Shown: positions 3,001 through 53,511 of the stretch, piece by piece
How positions within the stretch are numbered: the stretch's first letter is position 1
How the letters are laid out: every line of letters starts with the position of its first letter
Assembly: GCF_036365525.1 (NCBI RefSeq)
Contig: NW_027142325.1
Span: 248,001-312,000 of the forward strand
From: Heterodontus francisci
Taxonomy: Eukaryota
Direction: 5' to 3'
Length of the DNA stretch: 64,000 nucleotides
Translations under genes and position numbers: made by a program
Notes under the pieces: model-generated
The model's database searches: none
What the model saw: only the letters and a program-made list of their open reading frames with translations
Told to the model about the DNA's origin: nothing

Positions 3001-5335
3001 TATTCTATAAACTACCCAAATCCCTCTGTTATATTCCAGCCTGTAACTCACTGTTATTTATCCATTATTCTATAAACTACCCAAATCCCTCTGTTATATT
3101 CCGGCCTGTAACTCACTGTTATTTATCCATTATTCTATAAACTACCCAAATCCCTCTGTTATATTCCGGCCTGTAACTCACTGTTATTTATCCATTATTC
3201 TATAAATTACCCAAATCCCTCTGTTATATTCCGGCCTGTAACTCACCGTTATTTATCCATTATTCTATAAATTACCCAAATCCCTCTGTTATATTCCGGC
3301 CTGTAACTCACCGTTATTTATCCATTATTCTATAAACTACCCAAATCCCTCTGTTATATTCCGGCCTGTAACTCACTGTTATTTATCCATTATTCTATAA
3401 ACTACCCAAATCCCTCTGTTATATTCCGGCCTGTAACTCACTGTTATTTATCCATTATTCTATAAATTACCCAAATCCCTCTGTTATATTCCGGCCTGTA
3501 ACTCACCGTTATTTATCCATTATTCTATAAACTACCCAAATCCCTCTGTTATATTCCAGCCTGTAACTCACTGTTATTTATCCATTATTCTATAAATTAC
3601 CCAAATCCCTCTGTTATATTCCGGCCTGTAACTCACCGTTATTTATCCATTATTCTATAAACTACCCAAATCCCTCTGTTATATTCCAGCCTGTAACTCA
3701 CTGTTATTTATCCATTATTCTATAAACTACCCAAATCCCTCTGTTATATTCCGGCCTGTAACTCACCGTTATTTATCCATTATTCTATAAACTACCCAAA
3801 TCCCTCTGTTATATTACAGCCTGTAACTCACTGTTATTTATCCATTATTCTATAAATTACCCAAATCCCTCTGTTATATTCCGGCCTGTAACTCACCGTT
3901 ATTTATCCATTATTCTATAAACTACCCAAATCCCTCTGTTATATTCCAGCCTGTAACTCACTGTTATTTATCCATTATTCTATAAATTACCCAAATCCCT
4001 CTGTTATATTCCAGCCTGTAACTCACTGTTATTTATCCATTATTCTATAAATTACCCAAATCCCTCTGTTATATTCCAGCCTGTAACTCACCGTTATTTA
4101 TCCATTATTCTATAAACTACCCAAATCCCTCTGTTATATTCCAGCCTGTAACTCACTGTTATTTATCCATTATTCTATGTATAAACTACCCAAATCCCTC
4201 TGTTATATTCCAGCCTGTAACTCACTGTTATTTATCCATTATTCTATAAATTACCCAAATCCCTCTGTTATATTCCAGCCTGTAACTCACTGTTATTTAT
4301 CCATTATTCTATAAACTACCCAAATCCCTCTGTTATATTCCAGCCTGTAACTCACTGTTATTTATCCATTATTCTATAAACTACCCAAATCCCTCTGTTA
4401 TATTCCAGCCTGTAACTCACTGTTATTTATCCATTATTCTATAAACTACCCAAATCCCTCTGTTATATTCCAGCCTGTAACTCACTGTTATTTATCCATT
4501 ATTCTATAAACTACCCAAATCCCTCTGTTATATTACAGCCTGTAACTCACTGTTATTTATCCATTATTCTATAAATTACCCAAATCCCTCTGTTATATTC
4601 CAGCCTGTAACTCACTGTTATTTATCCATTATTCTATAAACTACCCAAATCCCTCTGTTATATTCCAGCCTGTAACTCACTGTTATTTATCCATTATTCT
4701 ATAAATTACCCAAATCCCTCTGTTATATTACAGCCTGTAACTCACTGTTATTTATCCATTATTCTATAAATTACCCAAATCCCTCTGTTATATTCCGGCC
4801 TGTAACTCACCGTTATTTATCCATTATTCTATAAATTACCCAAATCCCTCTGTTATATTCCGGCCTGTAACTCACCGTTATTTATCCATTATTCTATAAA
4901 CTACCCAAATCCCTCTGTTATATTCCGGCCTGTAACTCACTGTTATTTATCCATTATTCTATAAATTACCCAAATCCCTCTGTTATATTCCAGCCTGTAA
5001 CTCACCGTTATTTATCCATTATTCTATAAATTACCCAAATCCCTCTGTTATATTCCAGCCTGTAACTCACCGTTATTTATCCATTATTCTATAAATTACC
5101 CAAATCCCTCTGTTATATTCCGGCCTGTAACTCACCGTTATTTATCCATTATTCTATAAACTACCCAAATCCCTCTGTTATATTCCGGCCTGTAACTCAC
5201 TGTTATTTATCCATTATTCTATAAATTACCCAAATCCCTCTGTTATATTCCAGCCTGTAACTCACTGTTATTTATCCATTATTCTATGTATAAACTACCC
5301 AAACCCCTCTGTTATATTCTAGCCTGTAACTCACT
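1..5335. repeat. Tandem satellite, 65-bp unit (~82 copies), with a 69-bp variant at the array edges; probably intronic and probably continues upstream of the window
   Basis: Unit tataaa(c/t)tacccaaatccctctgttatatt(c/a)c(a/g)gcctgtaactcac(t/c)gttatttatccattattc repeats continuously; the +4 bp (tgta) variant occurs at 1-290, ~4178 and ~5287. Confidence 0.98.
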
Positions 5336-5497
5336 CGTGTCTGATGTCTGTGTATAAACCATCCCAATCTGACCATATGATGTTATATCTGCTGTCACTA
5401 GATCACAATCAGTATATTGTCTCACAGTTTGATTTTGAAACAGTATTCTCTGTCCCTGTGCTGTTTTAATATTCTCGCTCTCTCTCTCTCTCCACAG

Positions 5498-5890
5498 AGG
5501 TTTCTGCTAATGGTTGGACAATGAGCACTGCGGATGATGTGAGTGTTGAGGAAGGAGGGTCCGCTGTCTTGCCGTGTACTTTCACCCACCCACACCCTGA
5601 TCAGACGGTCACCGGCTCTGTGACATGGTACAACCGCGATTCATGGGATTACAATGTTATTTTTAAGTGTACATATTCTGGTCCAGGCCATTCACAGAGT
5701 GAGCTGTGTGAGAATGTGAAACAGCAGGACGGCGGGAATCGATTCAGATTCGTGGGGAACTTCAGTAACAAAGATGTCTCAATAATGATGGAGCGGCTGA
5801 TCCGGGCGGACAGCGGTTATTATCGGTGTCGTGTGGAGCTCAATATTGGAAATATTAATGTACTGAAACTAACGAGTCTGAGAGTGGAAG
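5498..5890 (+). CDS. Exon: Siglec-15-like N-terminal Ig V-set domain (gene partial, leader exon not in window)
   Basis: Pyrimidine tract + cacag acceptor ending 5497; G|gtgagg donor after 5890; phase 1-1, 393 nt, open. Peptide GWTMST..AVLPCTFTHPH..W..IFKC..SELC..RFRFVGN..DVSIMMERL..AD.GYYRCRVE parallels human Siglec-15 as recalled (WSMQVP..AVLPCTFTHPH..VFRC..SELC..RFRLLGN..DLSLRVERL..AD..YFCRVE). Confidence 0.9.
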
Positions 5891-7202
5891 GTGAGGAACA
5901 ATGTTCAGGGGCTGCAGCTGCCCCGATAGCTCAATGGCTAAAGACTCCACCTGGTCTGGTCCTGAACCACATGGGTAAATAAACTCTCAGCAATCCCGGG
6001 CTTTGAAAGGGGAATATTGCCCGGGATTCCTGCTCCTGATCACTCTCCAGACACTCCTGCTGGAAGGTGTCTTATTGGACATTGAATAAGACAATGGGCC
6101 AGCATGTGATGCTCTCCACAGTCAAATAGTCCATTGCCACTCATTGACCAGGCTTGTGCTGTAAGGAAGGCCATCTGGGTGAGATCAGTAATAATATTTT
6201 AGGATAATGAGCTATTTCAGTTTGGACATTGGGTAAGTGCAGCATGTCCATCTCAGTCTCAGTGCTGTAGGCCTGCAGTGTCCAGCTCAAAGCTGATTGG
6301 ACCTGTTCCACCACTTCATATATTCTCAGTGGAGAATTGGCGGGTGGATCACAGGGAGACGATGTCAATTGGGTCATTGCTGCTCAGCTCACACTTCAGG
6401 GCAGTACCGAGGGAGTGCTGCACTGGCTGAGGTGCCATTAGCTGCACTTTAACCTTCCTCCGATGTTGCCCCGCACGTCGATTGAATCTTCTGGGCATTT
6501 CTGGGACCAATGGGAAATGATATTTAACCGAGACAAATGCAGTGTGATGCGGGTAGGTAGGATCAACACGGAATTCACTGAACATTTACAGGGAATAATA
6601 CAGAAAGTGGCTGAGAGAGAAAAGGATCGAGACTGTTAATGTACACACATCACTCAAAATTCACAACCAATGCAGTGAAGCCATTGACAAAACAAACAGG
6701 GCATTGGGTTGTATTAACAAAACCATTCAGTACAAGTCAAACCACTTCCCACTTTCTGCTAGTCTGAGAAACGTCCCTGACCTCTTACCCTCTGTTTCCT
6801 GTTTTGTCACCATCTTTCAATCTGTTCTGCTACCCGGCCCCCTGAGCCCACAATCCCTGGGATCTCCACTGGCTGAGTACTACACTGGGCAATGCCTCTA
6901 CCTACTGGACCACAGGGAGAGCTCAGAACTGAAATAAATTAAAGTTCTCATCAAGACCTGGATTTTGCTGCCTCACTGTGTGGTGGAGGGAGGTTCAATT
7001 GAAACATTTAAAAGGGAATTAGATTGAAATAAAGGAAGAATGTGCAGGGTTTTGGGGAGAAGGCGGGGGGAATAGCAGGAAGTGAATTGCTCTTTCGGTG
7101 AGCCGGTGCAGACATGTTGGGCTGAATGGTCTCCTTCTGCAGTGTAACAATTCTGTGATCTGTGAAGACACTGATCCATTCTAATGTCTGTCCTTTCCTC
7201 AG

Positions 7203-7553
7203 CTGCTAGTGGAAATGTCTCAGTGGTGACTGGGACCGAGGGAGCTTCAGTTACATTGCCCTGTATGTTCACACCCAGGAGTTACCGCACCCTGTCCACT
7301 GTTACATGGATGAAGAAGGAGCCCTACCAACACATAGTCACATTTAGAAACCAATCAAATGGATCTTGGACAACTGCAAATGGTGGAAATCGGTACGAGC
7401 TCATCGGGAATCCAAAGGAGGGAAACGCCTCAACCAGGATAAACCAGCTGAGTGTGAATGACAATCACACTTACCTGTGTCTGGTGGAATACACATCATT
7501 GGACAATTATCAACATCTGATCCAGACTGAGACACAGCTGCAGGTTGTACATG
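7203..7553 (+). CDS. Exon: second Ig V-set domain
   Basis: tcctttcctcag acceptor, G|gtaaga donor, phase 1-1, 351 nt, open; SVTLPC, VTW, RYELIGN..GNAS.RI..L...D...YLC V-set pattern; five N-x-S/T sequons. Confidence 0.88.
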
Positions 7554-7631
7554 GTAAGAAACCATTCCCACATTCTCCAGTGTATAGGGGTTGTACAAGA
7601 GGGTGAGCAGTGTAATATAAAACACTCATCA

Positions 7632-7935
7632 GCTGTGGCTCAGTGGTTATCACTCTCACCTCTGCGTCAGTCGGTTGTGGGTTCAAGACACTCCAATGCA
7701 ATACTGATGGAATGTGACACTGTTTAAGGTACTGTGTATGAGAAGAGATATTAAAGTAAGGCCTTCTCTGGAAGAGTATGGGAGTTGACCTAATGTCCTG
7801 GTCAATATTTATCTCTGAACCAACATCATCAAACCATAGTCTGATAATTATCTCATTGCTGTTTATGGGATCTTGCTGTGTGCAAATTATCTGCTGTGTA
7901 TCCTGCATTAAAACAGTGACTACACTTCAAAAACA
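7632..7935 (+). mobile_element. tRNA-headed Deu-domain SINE (SacSINE1-like), degraded
   Basis: A/B box-like gtggctcagtgg..gggttcaaga head; Deu-like gctgtttatgggatcttgctgtgtgcaaatt..acagtgactacacttcaaaa. Confidence 0.6.
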
Positions 7936-8650
7936 AAGTTCTGTCATTCACTGACTTCCTGGCTGACCTGCATCTTAACTCCATTTAATGAACTTGTTTC
8001 TGGAACCCTTCCTACCCTTGTCGAACAAAATCTATCAATCTCAGTGTTGAAATTTTCAATACATTCCCAGCATCAATAGCTTTTCCAGGGAGAGTTTCAG
8101 ATTTCCATTATCCTTTGTGTGAAGAAGTCCTTCCTGACATCACCCCAAACAGCCTAGCTCTAATTTGAAGGTTATGGCCCCTTGTTCTGGACTCTCCCAC
8201 CAGAGGAAATAGTTTCTCTCTATCTGTCCGGTGCCAGGGATCGGGACATCGGCTCAGGGCTGGAGAGGAACTTGCAGTGGGAGGGGGAGGATCCAGTTGT
8301 CATCATCCCCATGGGTACCAACAACGTATTTATAGAACCAGGAAAAAGGTTCTGCAAAGCGAGTATGAGCAGCTAGAAGCTAAATTAAAAAGCAGGACCA
8401 CAAAGGAAATAACCTCTGGGGTATTACCTGAGCCACGAGCATATTAGCGGAGGGTAAATAAGATTAGATAGTTAAATGCATCGCTCAAAGAGTGATGAGG
8501 GAGAACTGGGTTTTGATTTATGGGGCACTGGCACCTGTACTGGGGAATGTGGGAGCTGTACCGTTGGCACGGTCTTCATCTGAACCATGTTGGGACCAGT
8601 GTTCTGTTGAGTCATATAACTAGGGCAGTAGAGAGGGCTTTTACACTAAA

Positions 8651-11340
8651 AGGAAGGATGAATGAGAATGGACAGAGACTGCTTGAGTTGTGTACCTATC
8701 ATAACCTCTGCATCACCAACTTGTTCTTTCACACTAAACCCTGTCACCAGGTTTCTTGGAGGCACCCAAGATCACGTCGTTGGCACCAGCTGGACCTCAT
8801 CGTCACAAGGCGAGCCTCTCTAAACAGCGTTCAAATCACACGCAGCTTCCACAGTGCGGACTGCGACACCGACCACTCCCTGGTGTGCAGCAAAGTTAGA
8901 CTCAAACCAAAAAAGCTGCATCACTCCAAGCAGTAGGGCCGCCCGCGCATCAACACGAGCAGAATTTCTTATCCACAGCTGTTACATAAGTTTCTAAATT
9001 CACTTGAAAAAGCCCTTCAAAACACTCCCTCAGGGGATGCAGAGACCAAGTGGGCCCACATCAGAGACACCATCTATGACTCAGCAATGACCACCTATGG
9101 CAAACGTGTGAAGCAGAATGCAGACTGGTTTCAATCTCACTTTGAAGAGCTGGAACCTGTCATAGCCGCTAAGTGCATTGCACTGCTGAACGACAAGAAA
9201 GCCCCCAGTGAGTTAACATCCGTAGCACTTAAAGCAGCCAGAAGCACTGCACAAAGAACAGTCAGGCGCTGCACAAATGACTACTGGCAACACCTATGCA
9301 GTCATATTCAGCTGGCCTCTGACACCGGAAACATCAGAGGAATGTTTGATGGCATTAAGAGAGCTTTTGGGCCAACCATCAAGAAGATCGCCCCCCCTCA
9401 AATCTAAATCAGGGGACACAATCACTGACCAAGGCAAGCAAATTGACCGCTGGGTTGAGCACTACCGAGAGCTGTACCTCCAGGGAAAATGTTGTCACTG
9501 AGACCATCCTCAATGCAGCCCAGTCTCTGCCAGTCATGGATGAGCTGGATGTACAGCCATCAAAATCGGAACTCAGTGATGCCATTGATCCTTTAGCCAA
9601 CGGAAAAGCCCCTGGGAAGGACGGCATTACCCCTGAAATAATCAAGAGTGCCAAGACTGCTATACTTTCAGCACTGTACAAACTGCTTTGCCTGTGCTGG
9701 GATGAGGGAGCAGTACCACATGACATGTGCGATGCCAATATCATCAACCTCTGTAAGAACAAAGGTGACCGCGGTGAATGCAACAACTACTGTGAAATCT
9801 CCCTGCTCAGCATAGTGGGTAAAGTCTTCGCTCGAGTTGCTTTAAACAGGCTCCAGAAGCTGGCTGAGCGTGTCTACCCTGAGGCACAGTGTGGTTTTCG
9901 AGCAGAGAGATCCACCACTGACATGCTGTTCTCCCTTCGTCAGATACAGGAGAAATGCCGTGAACAACAGATGCCCCTCTACGTTGCTTTCATTGATCTC
10001 ACCAAAGCCTTTGACCTCATCAGCAGACGTGGTCTCTTCAGACTACTAGAAAAGATCGGATGTCCACCAAAGCTACTAAATATCATCACCTCATTCCATG
10101 ACAATATGAAAGGCACAATTCAGCATAGCGGCGCCTCATCAGACCCCTTTCCTATCCTGAGTGGCGTGAAACAGGGCTGTGTTCTCGCACCCACACTGTT
10201 TGAGATCTTCTTCTCCCTGCTGCTCTCTCATGTGTTCAAGTCTTCAGAAGAAGGAATTTTCCTCCACGCAAGATCAGATGGCAGGTTGTTCAACCTTGCC
10301 CGTCTAAGAGCGAAGACCAAAGTACAGAAAGTCCTCATCAGGGAACTCCTCTTTGCTGACGATGCTGCTTTAACATCTCACACGGAAGAGTGCCTGCAGA
10401 GTTTCATTGACAGGTTTGCGGCTGCCTGCAATGAATTTGGCCTAACCATCAGCCTCAAGAAAACGAACATCATGGGACAGGACGTCAGAAATGCTCCATC
10501 CATCAATATCAGTGACCATGCTCTGGAAGTGGTTCAAGAGTTCACCTAGCTGGGCTCAACTATCACCAGTAACCTGTCTCTGGATGCAGAAATCAACAAG
10601 CGCATGGGAAAGGCTTCCACTGCTATGTCCAGACTGGCCAAGAGAGTGTGGGAAAATGGCGCACTGACACGGAACACAAAAGTCCGAGTGTATCAAGCCT
10701 GTGTCGTCAGTACCTTGCTCTACAGCAGCGAGGCCTGGACAAAGTATGTCAGCCAAGAGCGACGTCTCAATTCATTCCATCTTCACTGCCTCCGGAGAAT
10801 CCTTGGCATCAGGTGGCAGGACCGTATCTCCAACACAGAAGTGTTCGAGGCGGCCAACATCCCCAGCTTGTACACACTACTGAGTCAGCGGTACTTGAGA
10901 TGGCTTGGCCATGTGAGCCGCATGGAAGATGGCAGGATCCCAAAGGACACATTGTACAGCGAGCTCGTCACTGGTATCAGACCCACCAGCCGTCCATGTC
11001 TCCGCTTTAAAGACGTCTGCAAACGCGACATGACGTCCTGTGACATTATTCACAAGTCGTGGGAGTCAGTTGCCAGTGATCGCCAGAGCTGGCGGGCAGC
11101 CATAAAGGCGGGGTAAAGCGTGGCGAGTCGAAGATACTGAGCAGTTGGCCGGAAAAAGAACAGAAGCGCAAGGAGAGAGCCAACTGTGTAACAGCCCCGA
11201 CAACCAATTTTATCTGCAGCGCCTGTGGAAGAGTCTGTCACTCTAGAATTGGCCTTTATAGCCACTCCAGGCGCTGCTCCACAAACCACTGACCACCTCC
11301 AGGCGCTTACCCATTGTCTCTCGAGACAAGTAGGCCAAAG
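8651..11340 (+). mobile_element. RTE-clade (BovB-like) LINE, 5' truncated, disrupted ORF
   Basis: NENGQRLLELC..SWRHPRS..WHQLD (EN end), FIDLTKAFD, GVKQGCVLAP, LFADD (RT), RWLGHVSRM..RIPK; 3' end gacaagtaggccaaag. Confidence 0.93.
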
Positions 11341-12975
11341 AGTGGGGGGAAGAGATCATGTGAGAGGAGATGTGGTAAATCAAATGAAAACGATAAGGTA
11401 ATAGAGCAGAGTGGCGAATTAAGTAATGATAACCAGAGTGTGGCAGGAAGGAACATGGCATACAAGCTTAAGAGTGTACCAGCAGAGAAGACCAGAGATG
11501 GCAGAAATGGTATAAAGAGAGAGTTAAAGGCTCTGTATCTGAATGCACACAGCATTCGTAATGAACAGTTGCTACACTGTATGACAGAGTATACAGGAAG
11601 AAATAAATGGGGCCTGTAAGAAAGGTACTGCAATCACATGGGTGATTTTAATCTATATAGATTGGACGAATCAGATCGGCAAATGTTGCTTGAAAAATGA
11701 GTTCACAGAGTGTATTTCGGACAATTTCACAGAGCAGTACGTTCTGGAACCAACTAGGGAGCATGCTATTCTAGACCTGGTAATGTGCAATCAGACAGGA
11801 TTGGTCATTAACTTCATGGTAAAGGAGCCTCTAGGTGACAGTGATTATAACATGAGAGAATTTCACATTCAGTTTGAAGGGGAGATGTGTGGGCCTAAGA
11901 CTAGTGTTTAAACCTAAATAAAGGTAAATACAAGAGTATGCCAGCAAAAAATATAAAATCAGACTGTAAAAGCTTCTACAGGTACGTAAAAAGGAAAAAG
12001 ACAAATGTGGGTCCATTACAGGCAGAGTCAGGACAATTTATAATGGGGAATAGAGAAATGGCAGAGAAGCTAAATAATTATTTTGTGTCTGTCTTCACTG
12101 AGGAAGATATAAGAAATTTCCCAGAATTAGAGATCCAAGGGGTTAGGGGGAATGAGGAATTGAAGGAAATTAGTATTAGTAAGAAGGTTGTATTGGAGAA
12201 ATTAATGGGGCTGAAGGTTGATAAGTCCCCAGGACCTGATATTCTACATCCCAGAGTGTTTAAAAAGGTAGCTATGGAGATAGTGGATGCATTGGTGATC
12301 ATCTTCCAAAATTCTATAGATTCTGGAGCAATTCCTGCAGATTGGAAGGTTGCAAATGTCATCCCACTATTTAAGAAGGGAGGGAGAGAAAACAGGGAAT
12401 TACAGACCTGTTAGCCTTACATCGGTCATTGGGAAAATGCTAGAATCTATTCTAAAGGATGTGATAAATGGACACTTGGATAATAATGATCTGATTGAGC
12501 ATAGTCAACATGGATTTATGAATGGGAAATCATGTTTGATGAACCTGTTGAAGTTTTTTGAGGATGTTACTAACAGAATTGATAAAGCAGAGTGGTATAC
12601 CTGGATTTTCAGAAGGCTTTTGATAAAGTCCCCCACAGGAGGTTGTTTAGCAAAATTAAAGCACATGGGATAGGAGGTAATCTACTGGCATGGATTAAGG
12701 ATTGGTTAACAGGCAGAAAGCAGACAGTAGGAATAAACGGGTCATTCCCGTATTGGCAGGCTGTGACTAGTGGGGTACCGCAGGGATCAGTGCTTGGGCC
12801 CCAGCTGTTCACAATATATATCAATGATTTGGATGTGGGCACCATATGTAGTATTTCCAAGTTCACGGATGACACAAAACTAGGTGGGAATGTGTGTTGT
12901 GAGGAAGATGCAAAGTGGTTTCAAGGGGATTTGAACAGATTTAGTGAGTGGGCAAGAATGTGGCAGATGGAATTC

Positions 12976-14056
12976 TTTTGGGCCTCCTTATCTCGAGAGA
13001 CAATGGATACGCGCCTGGAGGTGGTCAGTGGTTTGTGAAGCAGCGCCTGGAGTGGCTATAAAGGCCAATTCTGGAGTAACAGGCTCTTCCACAGGTGCTG
13101 CAGAGAAATTTGTTTGTTGGGGCTGTTGCACAGTTGGCTCTCCCCTTGCGCCTCTGTCTTTTTTCCTGCCAACTACTAAGTCTCTTCGACTCGCCACAAT
13201 TTAGCCCTGTCTTTATGGCTGCCCGCCAGCTCTGGCGAATGCTGGCAACTGACTCCCACGACTTGTGATCAATGTCACACGATTTCATGTCGCGTTTGCA
13301 GACGTCTTTATAACGGAGACATGGACGGCCGGTGGGTCTGATACCAGTGGCGAGCTCGCTGTACAATGTGTCTTTGGGGATCCTGCCATCTTCCATGCGG
13401 CTCACATGGCCAAGCCATCTCAAGCGCCGCTGACTCAGTAGTGTGTATAAGCTGGGGATGTTGGCCGCTTCAAGGACTTCTGTGTTGGAGATATAGTCCT
13501 ACCACCTGATGCCAAGTATTCTCCGAAGGCATCGAAGATGGAATGAATTGAGACGTCGCTCTTGGCTGGCATACGTTGTCCAGGCCTCGCTGCCGTAGAG
13601 CAAGGTGCTGAGGACACAGGCCTGATACACTCGGACTTTTGTGTTCCGTGTCAGTGCGCCATTTTCCCACACTCTCTTGGCCAGTCTGAACATAGCAGTG
13701 GAAGCCTTGCCCATGCGCTTGTTGATTTCTGCATCTAGAGACAGGTTACTGGTGATAGTTGAGCCTAGGTAGGTGAACTCTTGAACCACTTCCAGAGCGT
13801 GGTCGCCAATATTGATGGATGGAGCATTTCTGACATCCTGCCCCATGATGTTCGTTTTCTTGAGGCTGATGGTTAGGCCAAATTCATTGCAGGCAGACGC
13901 AAACCTGTCGATGAGACTCTGCAGGCATTCTTCAGTGTGAGATGTTAAAGCAGCATCGTCAGCAAAGAGGAGTTCTCTGATGAGGACTTTCCGTACTTTG
14001 GACTTCGCTCTTAGACGGGCAAGGTTGAACAACCTGCCCCCTGATCTTGTGTGGAG
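12976..14056 (-). mobile_element. RTE-clade LINE 3' fragment, same family as 8651-11340
   Basis: Minus-strand ORFs 13499-14032 and 13025-13423 are near-identical to the + copy; C-terminal CxxC..H motif. Confidence 0.93.
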
Positions 14057-14222
14057 AAAAATGTGAGGTTATCCACTTTGGTAGGAGGAATAGAGGTGCA
14101 GAGTATTTCTTAAATGTTAAGTGATTAGAAAGCAATTAGATGTGCAAAGGGACCTGGGTATCCTTGTCAATAAGTCAATGAAAGCCAACATGCAGGTTCA
14201 GCAAGCAATTAAGAAGGCTAAT

Positions 14223-14441
14223 AAAAACAAGAAATGCTGGAACCACTCAGCAGGTCTGGCAGCATCTGTGGAAAGAGAAGCAGAGTTAACGTTTCAGGTC
14301 AGTGACCCTTCATCGGAACTGGTCACTGACCCGAAACGTTAACTCTGCTTCTCTTTCCACAGATGCTGCCAGACCTGCTGAGTGGTTCCAGCATTTCTTG
14401 TTTTTATTTCAGATTTCCAGCATCCGCAGTATTTTGCTTTT
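14223..14441. mobile_element. Penelope-like element remnant: inverted pseudo-LTR hairpin with 15-bp TSD
   Basis: ~88-bp inverted arms (14220-14307 and 14321-14408); TSD attaagaaggctaat at 14208-14222 and 14442-14456; matches the 3' end of the Penelope element at 54093. Confidence 0.88.
14284..14322 (-). ncRNA. Degenerate minimal type I hammerhead ribozyme in a Penelope pLTR
   Basis: Minus strand ccagtt-CCGATGA-agggtcactgacct-GAAACGTT-aact: helices I and II and palindromic helix III are present; core CUGAUGA carries a U>C change. Confidence 0.65.
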
Positions 14442-14698
14442 ATTAAGAAGGCTAATGGTAGGTTAGCCTTTATTGCAAGAGGATTTGATTACAGGAGTAG
14501 TGAAGTTTTGTATAGAACCTTGGTTAGACCACACTTGGAATACTATGTGCAGTTTTGGTCCCCTTACCTTAGGAAAGATATTATTGCAACGAAGATTTAC
14601 CAGACTAGTTCCTGGGATGGAGGGACTGTCTTATGAAGAGAGATTGGGGAAACTAGGCCTGTATTCTGAAGAGTTTCAAAGAATGAGAGGTGATCTCA

Positions 14699-15455
14699 CA
14701 CAAGTGCCAGGCATTGACCATCTCCAACAAGAAAGAATCTAACCATCTCCCCTCGATATTCAATGGCATTACTGTTGCTGAATCCCTTACTATCAACATT
14801 CTGGGGTTACAATTGATCAGAAACTGAACTGAAGTAGCCATACTGTGGCTACAAGAGCAGGTTAGAGGCTAGGAATCCTGCGGCGAGTAACTCACCTCCT
14901 GACTCCCCAAAGCCTATCCACCATCTATAAGGCACAAGTCAGGACTGTGATGGAATACTCTCCACTTGCCTGGATGGGTGCAGCTCCAACAACACTGAAG
15001 AAGCTCGACACCATCCAGGATAAAGCAGCCCGCTTGATTGGCAGCCCATCTACAAATATTCACTCCCTCCACCACCGATGCACAGTGTCAGCAGTGTGTA
15101 CCATCTACAAGATGCACTGCAGCAATGCACCAAGGCTCCTTAGGCAGCAACTACCAAACCCATGACCTCTACCAACTAGAAGGACGAGGGCAGCAAATGC
15201 ATGGGAACACAACCACCTGCAAGTTCTCCTCCAATTCACACACCATCCTGACTTGGAACTATATCGCCATTCATTCACTGTCACTGGGTCAAGATCCTGG
15301 AACTCCCTAACAGCACTGTGGGTGTACCTACCCCACTTGGACTGCAATGGTTCAAGAAGGCAGCTCACCACCACCTTCTCAAAGGCAATTAGGGATGAGC
15401 AATAAATGCTGGCGTGGCCAGCGACGCCCACATCCCATGAAAGAATAGAAAAAAA
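14699..15455 (+). mobile_element. 3' fragment of a second CR1/L2-group LINE family
   Basis: MEYSPLAWMGAAPTTLKKLDTIQDKAARLI; 3' end aataaatgctggc..cccacatcccatgaaagaat; interrupts CR1 ORF2. Confidence 0.8.
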
Positions 15456-15832
15456 CTAATTGAAACCTACAAAATACTTAAAGGGATAGACAGAGTAGAT
15501 GCAGCCATGATGTTTCCCCTGGGTGGGGAGTCTCGAACCAGGGAACACAATTTCAAAATAAGCGGGAAGCCACTTAGGACAGAAATGAGGAGAGATTTCT
15601 TTACTCAGAGGGTTGTGAATCGTTGGAATTCTCTACCCCAGAGGGCTGTGGAAGCTCAGTCATTGAGTGTGTTTAAAGCAGAGATTGACAGATTTCTAAA
15701 TACCAATGACATAAGGGGATATGGGGATAATGTGGGAAAAATGCATTGAAGTGGATGATCAGCCATGATCATCTTGAATGGCAGGGCAGGCTGGATGGGC
15801 TGAATGGCCTACTCCTGCTCCTATGTTCCTAT

Positions 15833-18197
15833 GAAGGCAGAGTTATCTAAAGTGAACTGGGAAACTAGGTTAAAAGGTAGGACAGTAGAGATGCAGTGGC
15901 AGACTTTTAGGGAGATATTTAATAACTCTCAGCAAAGATTTATTCCAGTGGAAAGAATGATTCTTTGAGAAACATGCATCATCCGTGGTTAAATAAGCAA
16001 GTTGAGGATAGTATCAAATGAAAGAAACACTGTATAAATCTGCAAAGGTTAGTGCTGTGTCAGAAGCTTGGACAGTCTGAGAGAGAACTAGCTGGTGATA
16101 TAAAAACAGATTGTAAGGGTTTCTACATGTATTTAAATAAGAAAAAAGTAACTAAAGCTAGAATTGGTTCTCTAGAGTGTGAGTCTGGGTAATTGATCAT
16201 GGTAAACAAGGAAATAGCGGAGGTGTTGAACAGGTATTTTGTATCTGTTTTCACTGCAGAAGACTGAGAAAACCTGCCAAAGATACTTGAAAATCAGGAG
16301 GTGAAAGGGAGGGAGAAATTTAAAACAATCACCATCACCAGGGAAAAGCTGCTGGGAAAACTATTAGGCCCAAAGGTTGACAACTCCCCAGGATCAGATG
16401 GTCTGCATCCTAGGGTCTTAAAAGAAGTGGCTGCAGACAGAGTAGAGGCTTTGTTTATAATCTTCCAAAATTCATAGATTCTGGAAGGGTCTGAGCGGAT
16501 TGCAAAATAGCAAATGTAAAATCTTCATTCAAGAAAGGAGGGAGACAGGAAGCAGGAAACTATAGGCCAGTTCGTCTAACATATATCATAGGGAAATTGC
16601 TAGAATCCATTATTAAGGAGTTTATAGAAGGATACTTCGAAAATCATAATGGGATCTGACAGACTCAACATGGTTTTGTAAAAGGGAAATCATGTTTAAC
16701 TAATTTATTAAAGTTCTTTGAGGAATTCACAAGCGAGGTGGATAAAGGGGAATCTGTAGTTGTGGTGTATTTGGACTTCCAAAAGGTATTTGATAAGGTG
16801 TCACATAAAAGGTTACTACACAAGATAAGAGCACATGGTGTAGGAAGTAACATATTAGCATGAATAAAAGACTAGTTAGTTAACATGAAGCAGAGAGTAG
16901 GGATAAATGGGTCTTTTTCAGGTTGACAAGATGTAACAAGTGGAGTGCCACAGGGTTCAGTGCGGGTGCCTCAACTATTTTAAATTTATGTCAATGAATT
17001 GGGGCGGCACAGTGGTTAGCACCGCAACTTCACAGCTCCAGGGACCCGGGTTCGATTCTGGGTACTGCCTGTGTGGAGTTTGCAAGTTCTCCCTGTGACC
17101 GCGTGGGTTTTCGCCGGGTGCTCCGGTTTCCTCCCACAGGTGATAGGTAAATTGGCCATTGTAAATTGCTCCTAGTGTAGGCAGGTGGTAGGGAATATGG
17201 GATTACTGTAGGGTTAGTCGGGACAGACTCAGTGGGCCAAAGGGCCTGTTTCAGTGCTGTATCGCTAAATAAAATATAAATAAAAAGAGACCAAATGTAT
17301 GGTTGCTAAATTTGCCCAGGACACCAAGATAGGAAGTAAGCTGTCAAGAGGACATAAAGAGTTTACAAAAGGATATAAATAGATTAAGTGAGTGGGTAAA
17401 AATTTAGCAGATGGAGTATAATGTGGGAAAATGTGAACTTGTCCACTTTGACAGGAAGCTTAGAAAAGCGGTATACTATTTAAATGGAGAGAGATTGCAG
17501 AACCCGGTGGTACAGAGGGATCTGGGTGTCCTGGTACATGAATCACAAAAGGTTAATATGCAGGTACAGCAAGTGATTAGGAAGGTAAATGGAACATTGA
17601 TGTTTATTGCAAGGGAAATTGTGTGTCAAAGTGGGTAAGTTTTACTGCAGCTGGACAGGGCCTTGTGAGACCACATCTGGAGAACTGTGTGCAGTTTTGG
17701 TCTCCTTATTTGAAAAGGATATAATTGTGTTAGAAGCAGTTCAGAGACGGATCACTCGACTAATTCTGGGGATGGAGAGCTTATCTTATGAAGAAAGGTT
17801 GAACAGGTTGGGCCGAGACTTGTTGGAGGTTAGAACAATGAGAGGTGATCTTACTGAAACATATAGGTTCCTGAGGGGACGTGATAGAGTGTATACTGGG
17901 AGGGTGTTTTCTCTTGTGGGGGAGACGAGAACTAGGGGACACAGTTTAAGAATAAGAGCTCTCCCTTTTAAGATGGCGATGAGGAGAATTTCTTTTTCTC
18001 GAACGGTCATTAGTCTGTGGAATTCTGTTCCCCAGAAAGCAGTGGAGGCAGGGTCAATGAGTTTATTCAAAGCTGAGTTAGATGGATTTTTGATAGACAA
18101 GGGAGTCAAGGGTTATGGGGGGGGGCAGACAGGAAAGTGGAGTTAGGATCACAACCAGATCAGGAATAATCTTATCGAAAGGCGGAGCAGGCTCACA
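15833..18197 (+). mobile_element. Degraded CR1 ORF2 and 3' end
   Basis: RT remnants (LDFQKVFDK, GVPQGSV), QRDLGVLVHES, RTRGHSLRI. Confidence 0.88.
17002..17285 (+). mobile_element. HE1-type tRNA-derived SINE
   Basis: gggcggcacagtggttagc..ggttcgattc head; gggcctgtttcagtgctgtat tail plus AT-rich repeats. Confidence 0.85.
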
Positions 18198-18415
18198 AGA
18201 ACAAAAGAAATAGCAGCAGGAATAGACCATGTGACCCGTCAAGCCTGCTCCGCCATTCAATATGATCATGGCTGATCTTGGGCTTCAATTCCACTTTCCC
18301 GCCCAGCCTCAGTCTCAGCCTTAAATATATTCAGTGATGGAGCATCCGCAACCCTCTGGGGTAGAGAATTCCAAAGATTCACAACCCCTTGAGTGAAGTA
18401 ATTTCTCATCTCAGT

Positions 18416-19254
18416 TGTCATACTGGGCCCCCCACCTGCCAAGAATGAGGCACATTAATTTCACCACACGGACATTAAATTTCAAATTGTTGTTGGGAAG
18501 AAGAGAAGGCCTGTGACAATGGGTTACCAGGCCCCTGGCTGGAAAGATATTTTTGGAACAAAGGAGCTATCCCCTGCTCCAATACAATCCACAAACAGAT
18601 GTGGTCAGACCAGTTAGTCACATGACTAACCTGCTTGGTTGGCATCTCGATTTATTTCTGATTTGTACAGTTTTGAACTGAGAATCTGCAGAAAACTGTT
18701 TACTCCCAGACTGAAGAAGACCTCCTGTCTGTCTGTCTGCCTGCTCCCATCGCTTTCTCACCAGCTTCTGAATCCATTGAAGACACATGAACCCCAAGAG
18801 AGAAAAGTCTCCTACAGTGAACAAGGTTTAAGAAGAATACTGGGCCCCAATGAAAAGCAAGATCTGCTTACAAGCAAGGACTCTGCAGTGAGTTCGAAGA
18901 CCTGTAACAAAAACTCTTCAGATATTGCTGTAAGCTTTTACGCTTTATTTCTTCTGCTCTTTTCTGTCCCTATCTGCATGTGTATACCACGTATGCATGC
19001 TAGCATGGGCGCGTCGTGCATCCATAGGCATTAACTGAATTAGAGTTTAAGTTTAATAAAATTTCACTTTTCTTCTTTAAACCTAAGAAAACCTGTTTGT
19101 GCTGGTTTCATTGCCTTATAATTGGAAAGCTGTGAACAAGAGTTCACCAAGGGAGAGCTAAAAACACAGTGTATTTGAAATAAAACCCTGTTACAGTAAT
19201 ACCAGGTGAAGGCCGAAAGGGAATCCTAGACCTCTTTCTCACCTGATCGTAACA
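18416..19254 (+). mobile_element. Solo LTR, same family as the LTR at 30264-31000
   Basis: TGTCA...TAACA termini, 4-bp TSD CAGT on both sides, internal AATAAA. Confidence 0.88.
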
Positions 19255-19283
19255 CAGTCCTTATCCTGAGACTGTGCCCCTGT

Positions 19284-20303
19284 TGTTACGAGGGTTTCCA
19301 TTTTTTGTTATAACTTGAGAATCTATATTTTAAAAACTGAAAAGGATTCCATGGATGCTGGAATCTTCAAGAAGCTGAACTTTGGATGTTTTTTTATGGG
19401 AAGGTCAACAGAAGGTTGACCATTAAACAAATTTTACTGAAAAACATCGGTTTGCAAATAACCCAGCAGGGTGTTTGTGCTGTGACTCTGAAAAGGATGT
19501 TTACAAGGAAATGACAAACCAAGATTTCAGGTTGTCATACAGCCTGCCTCTGGAAAAGTTTTTGTTTCATTTTGAACTCTTAAGAAAGGCCAGTGGTTGT
19601 TTGGCCAAGAACAGAAAGAAATTTGCTTCCTGACCTGCCAGAAGAAAACAGCTCTCTCTTTAAAGAATTCCTGCATCAAGTTGTATTGTTGCCTCCCTGT
19701 ATTTGAAGAAATCCTGAATGTTTTCAGAAACCTTGCATCTTTGAAAGAACTTTGCATAGAATGTGCAAGAATTGAAACCTTTGTTACTGCACATCTGATG
19801 TAAGACTTATGCAATGCCTTCCGTAGCTGCATCTCTTGAAAACCTACCTAGACTGTTCATCAACATTGTTGGAAAGAACTGTTCTAGGACGATTCCCAGT
19901 GGCAGCCACCTATTCGCCTTTGGGACACCTCGCCAACACAGAGGACTTCCATACCTTCTCTTCAGTCTCAGTTTTTTATTCCTTCCAACTGTAACAGTTG
20001 TAAACAAAAATCATTTTTTCTCCCGGTTAACCGGTTGTTTATGTGAGTGTGTGAGGGCGAGGATAAAAATAAAGGGTTTTAATATTTCAATTCGTGCATA
20101 TGTTTACTTCATTATTGGTTAAGACTTAGTTTATAATAAATGGATAATTTTGTTGTTTATTAAAAAATATCTGGTTGGTGTGCTTTATTCTGGAGTAAAA
20201 TAGATTGGCTGTTTCAGTAAGTGGGAAAATTTAAATACATGTTGTGACCTGTGGAGAAGTGGGACTGAATTAACAGTGCACTCCTCCTGCCTCGGTTATA
20301 ACA
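19284..20303 (+). mobile_element. Solo LTR, same family as 58014-59051
   Basis: TGTTA...TAACA termini; CR1 sequence resumes on both sides; TSD not clean. Confidence 0.82.
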
Positions 20304-20799
20304 TCTTGTTTTAGATTCCCCGCATGGCGGAAACAATCTCTCAGTGTCTACCCGATCCAGAACTTTCAGAATCATGTACATTTCAATGAGATGCCTCACA
20401 TTTTTCGAAACTCCAGAGAATGTAGTCCCAATTTACACAGCCTTTCATCATAGGACAACCCCCTCATCCCAGGGACCAATTTAGTGAACCTTCGCTGCAA
20501 CCCCTCCAATGCAAGTATATCCTTTTTTAAATGTGGAGACCAAAAATGCACACAGTATTCCAGATGTGGTCTCACCAAATCCCTGTACAATTATAGCAAG
20601 ACTTCATTATTCCTGTACTCCAATCCCCTTGCAATAAAGGCCAACATGCCATTTGCCTTCCTAACTGCTTGCTGTACCTGCATGCTATCTTTTTATGCTC
20701 GAAGGGTGACAGTATTAAACCTTTTCATTGTAAATACAACAGTATTAACTTGTCACTGTAAATACTACTGTATTAATCCCTGTCACTGTAAGTTTTTTT

Positions 20800-21095
20800 A
20801 TTAGAGTCATAGAAAGATACAGCACCGAAACAGGCCCTTCGGCCCACCGAGTCAGCACCGACCATCAACCACCCATTTATACTTATCCTACATTAACCCC
20901 ATATTCCCTCTCACATCCCTACCTTCCCTCAATTCTCCTACCATCTACCTACACTGGAGGCAATTTTACAATGGCCAATTTACCTATCAACCCTCAAGTC
21001 TTTGGCTGTGGGAGGAAACCGGAGCACCCGGAGGAAGCCCACACGGTCACAGGGAGAACTTGCAAACTCCGCACAGGCAGTACCCAGAATTGAAT
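20800..21095 (-). mobile_element. HE1-type SINE, 5' truncated
   Basis: Reverse complement of the SINE body (ggaaaccggagcacccgg..gcagtacccagaat). Confidence 0.82.
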
Positions 21096-21321
21096 TTCTA
21101 CAGGATTAATCCCTGTCAGTGTAAGGAACTATATTATTCATACACTCCAATTGCCATTTTCATTCACAGTCCATACTCTTCGCTTAATTGAGGTCCATCA
21201 CGATATTTCTGTCCTGCAATCGAGATTCACAATTATCCACAGACTTTGATTAATTGTCTCTGCATTGTTGGTCTCTCACCTTTGCTTGTCTCTAATTTGA
21301 TTTCTTTCTCTTTCTGTTCAG

Positions 21322-21421
21322 CTGCAGAGACTTTCCCCATTGCGATATTGTGCATTCCACTTGGAGTGAAACTCCTCGCCCTTATAGTGATGTGGATTAT
21401 TTTATTGAGGGATAAATCCAG
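21322..21421 (+). CDS. Exon: transmembrane segment with central lysine (AAETFPIAILCIPLGVKLLALIVMWIILLRDKSR)
   Basis: Long pyrimidine tract + ttcag acceptor (phase 1, matching the V2 donor); AG|gtatgt donor (phase 2); hydrophobic stretch followed by basic stop-transfer residues; LGVKLL resembles the Lys-containing TM of Siglec-15. Confidence 0.8.
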
Positions 21422-22179
21422 GTATGTAATATTGCTGGGAGACTCTTGTCTTTAAATGCCTGAAGCTTGATTCATGGGTGAGCTTTGGTGGTGATTCAAA
21501 CACTTGAGCCATTCTGGTCGATGAACAACCACACAGTGCATGTCCAGCAGAGGTCGCTGGATCCCAGCAGGATCAGGAACCCTGGGCAATGTTTCCTTTC
21601 CCTATCCCAGTAGCTCTTGGACCAATTGGAGAGCCCCGACTGCAGCCCAGCTGGGATTGGCTAACTCAGCCCAGACATGGGATGGAAACTGGCCCCTTTC
21701 TGGTCTGTACGATTCAGCTCCTCACAGCAGGAACTTGCTGAGCTATCGGGGACCTGATTAAATCTCCCAGACCACCTGTATTCACTATTGTCTATTTTAA
21801 TCTGCAAGGTTAAGCCCTCAGGGCATATTATGATGCAAAACTGATTGAATTGAATTTGATTGCAGTGCTGGGTTATTGACAGTCAGATTCCTGTTCACTT
21901 TCCAACCTCAGTCTTTCCCCAAGGCTTTCTGGAAAACACCAACCACTCACCTCAAGACCCGGAAAAAGAATAAAACACTCTGGGGATTGGCTGCTGTTCA
22001 GATGATGAGAATGATGGTTATCACAGTGTTGAAAATGATTTGCAGTTCCCTTTGACTCAGTTTTTGGTCACCTGTCCTCATATCTCCTCATGTGACTCGG
22101 TGTTCCATTTTGCCTGATTGTGTTCCTGTGAAGCACATGTTAAAAGTGCTATATAAATGCAAGTTTTTGTTCTTGCTAT

Positions 22180-24581
22180 ATAAACAAAGTGACTCCTGAC
22201 ATCGCAGCGGTCTGCTGACATAATCAGAGCGCTCCAAGCTGTGAACATGTGCAAACGGTCGCCTGCGCTGAGATGCTGCACATACTCAGCCTACGTCTTG
22301 CCAGGACTAACTGGTGCATGCGAAGGAAAACATTCTCCCCCCTCGCCCACTCACTCCCCACTCCTCGCTTCCAGCCACCCTGCTCTCCAGCTGCTCACTC
22401 CCCTCTTCCGCCCACCATCCTGCTCTCCAGCTGCTCACTCCCCTCTTCCGCCCACCATCCTGCTCTCCAGCTGCTCACTCCCCTCTTCCGCCCACCATCC
22501 TGCTCTCCAGCTGCTCACTCCCCTCTTCCGCCCACCATCCTGCTCTCCGGCCGCTCACTCCCCTCTTCCGCCCACCATCCTGCTCTCCAGCTGCTCACTC
22601 CCCTCTTCCGCCCACCATCCTGCTCTCCAGCTGCTCACTCCCCTCTTCCGCCCACCATCCTGCTCTCCAGCTGCTCACTCCCCTCTTCCGCCCACCATCC
22701 TGCTCTCCAGCTGCTCACTCCCCTCTTCCGCCCACCATCCTGCTCTCCAGCTGCTCACTCCCCTCTTCCGCCCACCATCCTGCTCTCCAGCTGCTCACTC
22801 CCCTCTTCCGCCCACCATCCTGCTCTCCAGCTGCTCACTCCCCTCTTCCGCCCACCATCCTGCTCTCCAGCTGCTCACTCCCCTCTTCCGCCCACCATCC
22901 TGCTCTCCAGCTGCTCACTCCCCTCTTCCGCCCACCATCCTGCTCTCCAGCTGCTCACTCCCCTCTTCCGCCCACCATCCTGCTCTCCAGCTGCTCACTC
23001 CCCTCTTCCGCCCACCATCCTGCTCTCCAGCTGCTCACTCCCCTCTTCCGCCCACCATCCTGCTCTCCAGCTGCTCACTCCCCTCTTCCGCCCACCATCC
23101 TGCTCTCCGGCCGCTCACACCTCGCTTTCGTCCTCCCCCATCCTGCTCTCCGGCTTCTCAGTCCCCTCTTCCTCCCACCATCCCACTCTCCGGCCGCTCA
23201 CTCCCCGCTTTCCCCGGCCCATCCCGCTCTCCGCCGCTCATTACCCGCTTTCCCCTCACCATCCCGCTCTCTGGCCACTCACCCCCCCCACTTTCCCCAC
23301 CCCCCCATCCCTCCAGATGCTAGCTCCAAGGCCCGCTGCTTCCTTCCTCTCGGCTACTCGATCCCACATTCGATCGTTCCTCACCGCACTGCCCAGAGAA
23401 GCCAGGTGGGCCTGGAGGGGTGATGGAACGATATAGGAGTGAGTGGCCGAGAGGATGGAAGCGGCGCGGCCTGGAGCTAGTGTCTGGAGGGATGGTGGGG
23501 TAAGCGGGAAGTGAGCAACCGGAGAGTAGGAACCGGGGGAAGCGGGGAGTGAGCAGACGGAGAGTGGGATGGGGGGGGAAGTGGGGAGTGAGCGGCTGGA
23601 AAGTGGGATGGGGGTGGAAGCGGGGAGTGAGCGGCCGGAGAGTGGGATGGGGGGGGAAGCGGGGAGTGAGCGGCCGGAGAGTAAGATGGCGGGGGGGATA
23701 CGGGGAGTGAGCGGCCAGAGAGTGAGATGGGCGGGAAAGCGGGGAGTCAGCGGCCGGAGAGTGGAATGGGGGGGGGAAGGGGGAGTGAGCGGCCGGAGAG
23801 TGGGATGGGGGTAGAAACGGGAAGTGAGCGGCTGGAGAGTGGGATGGGGGGGAAGCGGGGAGTGAGGGGCCGGAGAGTAGGATTTGGGGGAAGCGGGGAG
23901 TGAGCAGCCGGAGAGCTTGATCGGGTGTGGGGGCGAAGCAGGGATTGAGCGGCCGGAGAGCTTGATCCGGTGTGGGGGGGAAGCAGGGAGTGAGCAGCCG
24001 GAGAGCAGGATGGGTGGGGGGGGGGGAAGTGGGGAGTGTGCAGCCGGAGAGTGGGATGGGGGGGGGGAGCGGGGAGTGAGCGGCCGGAGAGCAGGATGGG
24101 GGGTGAAGCGGGAAGTGAGTGAGCGGACAGCGGGATGGCACTGAAACCTCACTGAATTACGGAGGGTGTGCAGCACTGTCAGAGGTGCTGTCCTTCTGAG
24201 AAAGTTTAAACAGTGCAACGTTCTCCGAGTATCAACCAAAACATGTCCATTGTCTGCTGTCATGTTTGCTTATGAAATGACAGTCACTGCTCCTAAAGTA
24301 ATTCACTTTAGGTGAATTAAGATGACTAGCTACTAAATAACTGGCGCATGCGCAGGAGGGAGGGGAGACTGTTGGGGGTGGGATGGCGGTGGCAGCATGA
24401 CAATATTTGAGTGGATCTTTGGGTTGAAGTTGTTTATCTGTGATAAACAGATAAACCATCATTAATCCTGGCAGCTGCCTGAACGTCGCAGACACTGATG
24501 TTACAGTGGAACAGGCTGCATTTTCGCATGTGCTAGTACTGCGCCACCTGATGGTTGCGTTGTCAGCAAACGTCGCCCTTT
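22180..24581. mobile_element. Putative non-autonomous foldback-like element with inverted, tandemly repetitive arms
   Basis: The C-rich left arm and G-rich right arm are diverged reverse complements around ~23400; flanked by a 25-bp direct repeat ataaatgcaagtt(t/g)ttgttcttgct at 22153 and 24582. Confidence 0.55.
22381..23110. repeat. 40-bp C-rich tandem repeat (~18 near-identical copies)
   Basis: Unit tgctctccagctgctcactcccctcttccgcccaccatcc. Confidence 0.97.
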
Positions 24582-24784
24582 ATAAATGCAAGTTGTTGTT
24601 CTTGCTGAAAACAGGAACAACAATCAGACCCATTGTGTCAGTGTTTAACACTGATAATCTAATCTGTTTTTAAATACATGGGGAATCCTATGTAAACAGC
24701 TGCAGGTTGTATATGGCGGTTCTGAAAATGCTCTTATTTTACTGTTAATATGGCTCATTTTATTTAATCTTGTTTTGTCCCCAG

Positions 24785-24800
24785 AAAGGAGCAGGACTGA
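24785..24800 (+). CDS. Putative terminal coding exon (R)KEQD*
   Basis: tcttgttttgtccccag acceptor; joining in phase 2 to the TM exon gives AGA AAG GAG CAG GAC TGA; AATAAA ~280 nt downstream in non-repetitive sequence. Confidence 0.6.
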
Positions 24801-25080: not shown

Positions 25081-25086
25081 AATAAA
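25081..25086 (+). promoter_or_regulatory. Candidate polyadenylation signal of the Siglec-15-like gene
   Basis: AATAAA downstream of the putative stop codon. Confidence 0.4.
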
Positions 25087-52730: not shown

Positions 52731-53450
52731 ATTTCTGTGCTGCAGTAATTAGAAGATGTAGTCAGCAGGGCAGCTGCTTAACTGGAACATTCTCACAGCT
52801 GTTAAGCTGGAAAAACCCTTCTCTGGCTGTTCTGCCCCTCTCACTCTCTCACCCCTTTTAAGGTAGAAACTTGTCAGGTTGGGGTGTCAGTCAGGTGACT
52901 AAGGCCTCTCTCCTCTGGGATGATTCATACTATGTTCCAGGATATGGGAAGCGTTGTTCTATGAAGGTATATAAATGTTGTCTATTCTGATGAAAAGATG
53001 TGACTTCATACCTATGGCTGCAGAGTCAGTCTGTCTACAATAATCTTTGTTACCTCCATTCCTGAAGATTGGAGGGGGTGCATGGAATGGGGTGTTTTTC
53101 AATTCAAATTCCCTAACGTTAATTCAGATGTGGATAATGGGTTTCATCTTGAACAGACAGAAATGTTTATTGACAGCGCAGGAGGGGGTCACCTGACTTC
53201 TTCAATTTTGTCTGTGGCATAAATGTGCCCATTTGTAGTTCAGATCAGCAGTTTGCTTTTATGTCATAATTCCTCCCGTTCATTTCATATTTCATCACCG
53301 TTCCCTTTGTGAGCAACACTAATGTATTCTGTGTAATTTACCATCATCTTTGCACTGGAAATGAAGAAACACTTTGATCAACTTCTGTATTTTGGAGTTA
53401 AGAGACACGAAGCAGCGAGTGAGAAGGACGAAACACCGGAGAGTTTGGTG

Positions 53451-53511
53451 ATGAGGTTTCTCTACGTTTGGCTTTCTGCAGTCCTGCTCTCGGTCTCGGT
53501 GCGGGGTTACA
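53451..53511 (+). CDS. Candidate signal-peptide (leader) exon of a downstream gene
   Basis: gtgATG context; MRFLYVWLSAVLLSVSVRGY has n/h/c signal-peptide structure; A|gtaggt phase-1 donor; lies in a non-repetitive island. Confidence 0.45.

Follow-up and report, generated by a model that had tools for sequence, protein, structure and literature searches.

A horn shark Siglec-15-type receptor gene with two V domains, a membrane lysine and a short tail belongs to a multigene family of sharks and rays

Siglec-15-like receptors of cartilaginous fish are the subject of this report, which centers on a stretch of 64,000 nucleotides from the horn shark Heterodontus francisci (assembly GCF_036365525.1, contig NW_027142325.1, positions 248,001 to 312,000 of the forward strand), referred to below as the window. 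On its + strand, at 5498-24800, the window carries the last four coding exons of one such gene, encoding a first V domain (V1), a second V domain (V2), a transmembrane segment and a tail. The best explanation of what we found, and a probable one, is that the product is a type I receptor of Siglec-15 type with the layout V-V-membrane span with lysine-short tail, acting as an activating member of a multigene shark-and-ray family. The structural description and the family membership, taken apart from function, are almost certainly correct. The gene model is not new, as the spliced product proposed in a first-pass annotation of the window is an existing automatic RefSeq model named "Siglec-15". 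What is new for this locus is the exact match to that model, the position of the leader outside the window, the satellite in intron 1 and the leader exon of a neighboring gene, together with the residue and class counts, the reading frames opened by a tandem acceptor and by skipping of the membrane exon, and a caveat concerning transcripts of paralogues.

The exon structure, which the first-pass annotation had assembled in frame with phases 1, 1, 1 and 2, is borne out by splice sites read directly and by an exact match to a public protein. The V1 exon (5498-5890, 393 nt, phase 1 to 1) lies between the acceptor ...ctccacag/AG and the donor AAG/gtgagg, the V2 exon (7203-7553, 351 nt, phase 1 to 1) between ...ttcctcag/CT and ATG/gtaaga, and the transmembrane exon (21322-21421, 100 nt, phase 1 to 2) between ...ctgttcag/CT and CAG/gtatgt, while the last coding exon (24785-24800, 16 nt including TGA) follows ...gtccccag/AA. 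All four acceptors are pyrimidine-rich and end in AG, the first three exons have GT donors, none of the four translations contains a stop or a frameshift, and the window is free of N. Among the 266 proteins that we collected, a single one, P0252 (XP_067884628.1), contains all four exon translations exactly and contiguously, at residues 52-181, 183-298, 300-331 and 333-336, and its junction residues A, A and R correspond to the split codons of the window exons. Single exons served as queries for the searches, folds and trees reported here, and the full-length product was scanned with Pfam via P0252. When exon 1 alone was searched against 1.84 billion representative proteins, there were 222 matches at E ≤0.001 and 14 at E ≤1e-30; P0004, then used for a word-index search, returned 77 proteins at E ≤1e-10 among 466 candidates.

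The layout put forward in that annotation holds as well. Pfam recognizes a V-set domain on each of the first two exons, and P0252, in which they are contiguous, has two V-set stretches with no room for a third domain, V2 ending at residue 298 and the transmembrane exon beginning at 300. It is very improbable that the exons have been mis-joined, the 13.8-kb intron that separates V2 from the membrane span concealing a C2 or stalk exon, or the transmembrane and tail exons belonging to another gene. That intron is indeed long and rich in retroelement fragments, and one RefSeq paralogue model, P0028, runs from V2 into a transposon frame; but in P0252 the four exons follow one another without additional residues, and 32 family proteins from many species pass from V-V directly to a span with lysine. 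Moreover, tblastn of the collected proteins against the window (157, then 249, including C2-bearing ones) disclosed no C2 or other Ig exon, the matches being the four exons, the leader exon further downstream, and the parts of P0028 and P0012 that derive from transposons. In the stretch from V2 to the transmembrane exon the transposon part of P0028 was all else that matched, and the idea of a concealed C2 or stalk exon was rejected.

Judged from sequence and from a predicted model, exon 1 encodes a V-set domain of Siglec-15 type with the canonical arginine. Its Pfam V-set match (E 1.4e-13) scores 51.4 bits against a cut-off of 26, and the hallmarks of Siglec-15 that had been pointed out in it, namely an N-terminal tryptophan (in NGW), LPCTFTHPH, FKC...SELC and CRVE, are all present. 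In the numbering of the exon translation (5500-5889), Trp6, Cys26, Cys57, Cys70, Cys110 and Arg111 (the arginine of CRVE) align with human W44, C64, C95, C104, C142 and R143, with Cys26-Cys110 and Cys57-Cys70 as the canonical and extra pairs. The human counterparts form the disulfides C64-C142 and C95-C104, and R143 forms a salt bridge with sialic acid, on whose N-acetyl group W44 stacks (PMC10264397; this paper and PMC7226832 are drawn on in excerpt throughout). Human Siglec-15 (7zoz_A) is the best solved relative of V1 by sequence (E 1.8e-16, 63.3 bits), with CD33, TIM and JAML following at 25-29 bits, CD33 at 29. It is also the best fold match (E 2.3e-10, template-modeling scores 0.81/0.84, root-mean-square deviation 2.5 Å, 35% identity) of an AlphaFold2 model of V1, built from a 30-sequence alignment with a predicted local distance difference test score (pLDDT) of 84.0 and a predicted template-modeling score of 0.79.

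Whether V1 binds sialic acid is, in our estimate, an even question. Several observations weigh against it. Compared with bony-vertebrate Siglec-15, V1 has an F-G loop shorter by about four residues, from which the D(K/R)YES motif is missing; in the human protein this motif includes R153, Y154 and E155, which contact sialic acid (PMC10264397). Human Y87 is matched by a position within a variable loop, rich in indels and of differing length among family members, the arginine is missing from 18 of 80 distinct family V1 domains, and a cloned zebrafish Siglec-15 showed no strong binding of the glycans tested (PMC7226832). The shortened F-G loop and the losses of the arginine lend some weight to a different account, rather unlikely on balance, in which the receptor is activating but V1 has lost sialic-acid binding and recognizes a protein or pathogen ligand, the arginine being kept for other reasons. 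The distribution of variation within the horn shark fits that account too: 34 of 130 V1 positions vary among 13 distinct sequences, clustering at 45-51 (the C-C' region), at 115-122 (the F-G loop) and at the N-terminal border, as opposed to 16 of 116 positions among 13 distinct V2 sequences. Set against it are the retention of the arginine in 62 of the 80 distinct V1 domains and in none of 83 distinct V2 domains, the conservation of Trp6 and of both disulfide pairs, and the fact that the nearest relative in both sequence and fold is a proven sialic-acid-binding domain. Across the family the four V1 cysteine positions are near-invariant (74, 77, 79 and 78 of the 80 distinct domains), and V1 has four more residues between the extra cysteines than bony-vertebrate Siglec-15.

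The second domain is also a V-set, and its history differs from what had been supposed. V2 matches the Pfam V-set profile over positions 5-108 of 109 (E 3.7e-16, 59.7 bits), with a leucine in place of the sialic-acid arginine (YLCLVE) and no extra cysteine pair. Its best solved relative by sequence is the Siglec-15 V domain, narrowly (39.3 bits versus 36.4 for TIM-2). The fold matches listed for its model (pLDDT 90.6) are all V-type, including CRIg, the first domain of nectin and TIM; 7zoz_A ranks 22nd by E-value, yet has the highest listed TMq, 0.82. The first-pass annotation was thus right that V2 is a V-set and that there is no C2 domain, but V2 did not replace a C2. This is apparent from genes of cartilaginous fish with the layout V-V-C2, found in Callorhinchus milii (LOC103174418, P0029), Mobula hypostoma (P0049) and Heptranchias (P0024), whose third domain is of Ig_3/I-set type. 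P0029 and P0049, the genes that RefSeq names or once named Siglec-15, have a membrane lysine and a short tail, and P0024 has a tail with an immunoreceptor tyrosine-based inhibitory motif (ITIM).

A phylogeny of the two V domains had been suggested as a check, and we built a careful maximum-likelihood tree of 67 V domains and 134 columns, without an outgroup and with rows hand-chosen from the matches, P0001 being cut to three of its seven domains and domains of fewer than 95 residues being dropped. The tree, which includes bony-vertebrate rows, places window V1 within a family V1 clade of 18 rows (support 100/100) and window V2 within a family V2 clade of 13 rows (100/99). The family V2 clade joins the V2 of C2-bearing chimaera, shark and ray genes (100/99), the family V1 clade joins the V1 of C2-bearing genes (93/87), and the 48 chondrichthyan rows are split from the 19 bony-vertebrate rows (93/80). 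Because V2 groups with the V2 of V-V-C2 genes, the V-V pair is old in cartilaginous fish and the C2 domain was lost; the simplest reading is that a V domain was duplicated in the chondrichthyan stem and that the C2-less family shed its C2 later. Two V domains are also seen in 'Siglec-15' models of lungfish and gar (P0021, P0023 and P0001), one lungfish protein having seven V domains and an Ig_3-type domain. As these V domains pair with each other within the species on the tree, they stem from separate duplications.

The gene had been proposed to be one member of a chondrichthyan family. A family does exist and comprises 113 of the 266 proteins collected, membership being assigned by HMMER score to both exons and the counts including isoforms and fragments. 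As sampled, however, its sequences make it elasmobranch, its sources being 13 shark and 8 ray species, with all chimaera proteins found being V-V-C2, and it extends to ITIM-tailed and soluble forms. A membrane lysine is combined with a tail of fewer than 45 residues in 32 proteins and with a longer tail in 5; a lysine-free span is followed in 37 by at least one motif resembling an ITIM or an immunoreceptor tyrosine-based switch motif and in 10 by none; and 29 have no membrane span. The family is multicopy in the horn shark, from which 24 protein models were compared with the window. P0252, P0253, P0189 and others have a span with lysine, and P0003, P0187 and P0188 have lysine-free spans and tails with motifs such as SCTYAEI and VIYAAV. 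The V1 domains of these last three are 87-92% identical to window V1, that of the inhibitory P0003 reaching 92%, so that in this one species similar ectodomains are found on both charged-span, short-tail and ITIM-tail forms, as expected of paired receptors. We found no paper on this shark-and-ray family, subscription journals and supplements lying beyond the reach of the search, and a literature search combining DAP12/TYROBP with shark gave nothing on a shark DAP12 among the matches listed.

The membrane exon reads AETFPIAILCIPLGVKLLALIVMWIILLRDKS, with the lysine in the motif IPLGVK, followed by LLRDKS. This lysine is in register with that of bird, lungfish and teleost Siglec-15 (VPLGIK, ALGIK and LPLGAK), the alignment scores being reached by 0, 0 and 1 of 500 shuffles, respectively; for four lysine-free control spans the corresponding figure was 13 to 95 of 500. 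In Siglec-15, the arginine is needed for sialic-acid binding and the lysine for association with DAP12/DAP10 (PMC10264397, PMC7226832), and coupling of the receptor described here to an adaptor of DAP12 type is, in our estimate, somewhat more likely than not. The tail R-KEQD, identical in P0252 and P0253, has no tyrosine, in agreement with the earlier description of a tail free of tyrosine motifs. A second AG acceptor lies 4 nt downstream, and an exon starting at 24789 would give the tail R-SRTDPSQEAEKLNVQTAI in a frame open to 24846; this tail is found in P0186 and P0250. On sequence grounds, then, the tail is of 5 residues, or of 19 through the tandem acceptor. Were the membrane exon skipped, V2 would read on into that long frame too (E-RSRTDPSQ...), an arrangement present in the models P0266, P0185 and P0004, which have no span. 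Tentatively, and with somewhat less than even confidence, we suggest that three products may come from each activating gene (a membrane form with a tail of 5 residues, one with a tail of 19 and a soluble decoy) and that the lineage may have become, in sharks and rays, a fast-diversifying paired system with the role that CD33-related Siglecs have in mammals.

A functional scheme, which like the sialic-acid or pathogen-glycan receptor proposed in the first-pass annotation is an inference, can be sketched from these features. The arginine of V1 would bind a sialylated or other acidic glycan, the variable C-C' and F-G loops would tune the specificity, and V2 would act as a spacer or provide a second contact. 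The membrane lysine would pair with an adaptor of DAP12/DAP10 type bearing an immunoreceptor tyrosine-based activation motif and so lead to activation of myeloid cells, and the ITIM-tailed inhibitory sisters would set the opposing signal, as in paired receptors.

RNA-like data were available as six runs of unrecorded library type, of which the four aligned to 5336-7700 come from one sample of one study. Contig depth there is limited to the two V exons, apart from a peak at 6995-7152. In all four runs contigs join 5890 to 7203, skipping 1312 nt with GT..AG ends, and for this reason the material behaves as RNA; V1-V2 splicing is genuine, be it here or in a near-identical copy. The RNA junctions that the annotation had called for are thus seen for V1-V2, but no contig has the lysine codon of this copy at 5719-5721: at position 5720 all contigs of the four runs have T (Ile), against A (Lys) in the window and in P0252, and the isoleucine is shared with P0003, P0189 and others. 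Either the T is an allelic difference or it is a sign that paralogues alone are represented. Two further observations tell against this copy, as the single long V1-V2 contig (593 nt) differs from the window at 17 positions and the sole listed continuation past 7553, read by eye as E-KQTAPSTNI, resembles the inhibitory stalk of P0003, an exon for which is absent from the window at up to three mismatches. It might therefore be argued that the gene, the result of a recent duplication within a birth-and-death cluster, is silent or in decay and that its apparent transcripts come from paralogues, and the 5.3-kb satellite that ends shortly upstream of V1 could be cited in the same sense. We regard this as improbable: the four exons are open with canonical splice sites, several contigs match the V1-V2 joint and most of V2 with no differences (records 6, 13, 15 and 16), contigs drop rare variants, so that absence is not demonstrated, and the lone difference at 5720 could be allelic. 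Over V1-V2, where the contigs were examined, expression of this copy is neither shown nor excluded, and the reading of the locus as an intact activating receptor gene is retained with that caveat. The peak at 6995-7152, in the intron just upstream of V2, is a pile-up of RNA-like contigs with many differences and a summed depth of up to 2328 in X1, and is probably an expressed repeat.

The leader of P0252 comprises residues 1-50, and the corresponding exon is outside the window, upstream of it. A 65-bp satellite (81.7 copies, Tandem Repeats Finder score 9682, 97% matches, strand not assigned) of GC content 0.34 and strongly C-over-G composition (GC skew -0.6) occupies positions 2-5335, stopping 162 nt short of the V1 acceptor, which puts the leader exon further upstream and hence the satellite within the first intron. 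A leader exon in the remaining interval, 5336-5497, was considered and rejected, the sole ATG-started frame there being, by eye, short, non-hydrophobic and in the wrong phase. Further downstream, at 53361-53511 on the + strand, is the leader exon of the next paralogue, with the donor A/gtaggt in phase 1; the 50 residues that it encodes are exactly the first 50 of P0252, P0256, P0189 and P0257. Models of other paralogues begin at an internal methionine of this leader (53451), and for this reason the first 30 residues of the automatic models may be an over-extension. Beyond this leader exon, no further family copy was found in the window by open reading frame translations and tblastn. The first AATAAA past the stop codon of our gene, at 25081-25086 on the + strand, is a candidate poly(A) signal by pattern only.

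The introns are rich in repeats. The 13.8-kb intron at 7554-21321 contains retroelement fragments and reverse-transcriptase-like open reading frames on both strands. P0028 (XP_067884631.1), probably a chimeric automatic model, fuses a paralogue's V2 with a reading frame that shares 98.8% identity with a retroelement fragment of this intron; its matches in the window lie at 8717-9104 and 11663-11908. In the intron between membrane and tail exons are two arrays of an approximately 40-bp unit in opposite orientation, a C-rich one at 22350-23271 and a G-rich one at 23489-24138, about 220 bp apart, whose consensus units were compared by eye.

This copy alone adds little, its gene model being already in RefSeq, and the interest lies in the family. 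Siglec-15 is regarded as a conserved activating Siglec that stands alone, and it serves as a drug target in cancer and bone disease. In the shark-and-ray family it has multiplied, shed its C2 domain, retained an ancient second V domain and acquired inhibitory and soluble partners. The family thus provides naturally occurring V domains that vary around the sialic-acid site, and it allows a test of whether paired receptors evolve time and again from any Siglec at hand. On the tentative reading given above, the Siglec-15 lineage would do in sharks and rays the job of the mammalian CD33-related Siglecs.

Bony-vertebrate Siglec-15 (human structure 7ZOZ), a V-C2 receptor with a lysine-bearing membrane span that couples to DAP12/DAP10, is among the closest known systems. 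It shares with the window protein the sequence and fold of V1, the tryptophan, both disulfide pairs and the CRVE arginine, as well as the membrane lysine in its PLGxK context and a tail that begins without tyrosine. The differences are that the window protein lacks a C2 domain and has a second V domain where Siglec-15 has a single one, and that its tail is of 5 or 19 residues whereas that of birds and mammals is of about 50. In addition, the window gene belongs to a multigene family with inhibitory members, while Siglec-15 has been characterized as an activating Siglec that is conserved (PMC7226832). The chondrichthyan V-V-C2 genes P0029, P0049 and P0024 share the V1 and V2 types but keep the third domain that is absent from the window family. 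Mammalian paired CD33-related Siglecs, such as Siglec-5/14 and Siglec-11/16, carry near-identical ectodomains on either an ITIM tail or a charged span. The logic is the same as in the family described here, but they belong to another Siglec lineage and have V plus C2 ectodomains rather than V-V. TREM, CD300, PILR and NKp44 are DAP12-coupled receptors with a short V-only ectodomain, a charged membrane residue and a minimal tail; their layout is like that of the window protein, although none is a close sequence relative.

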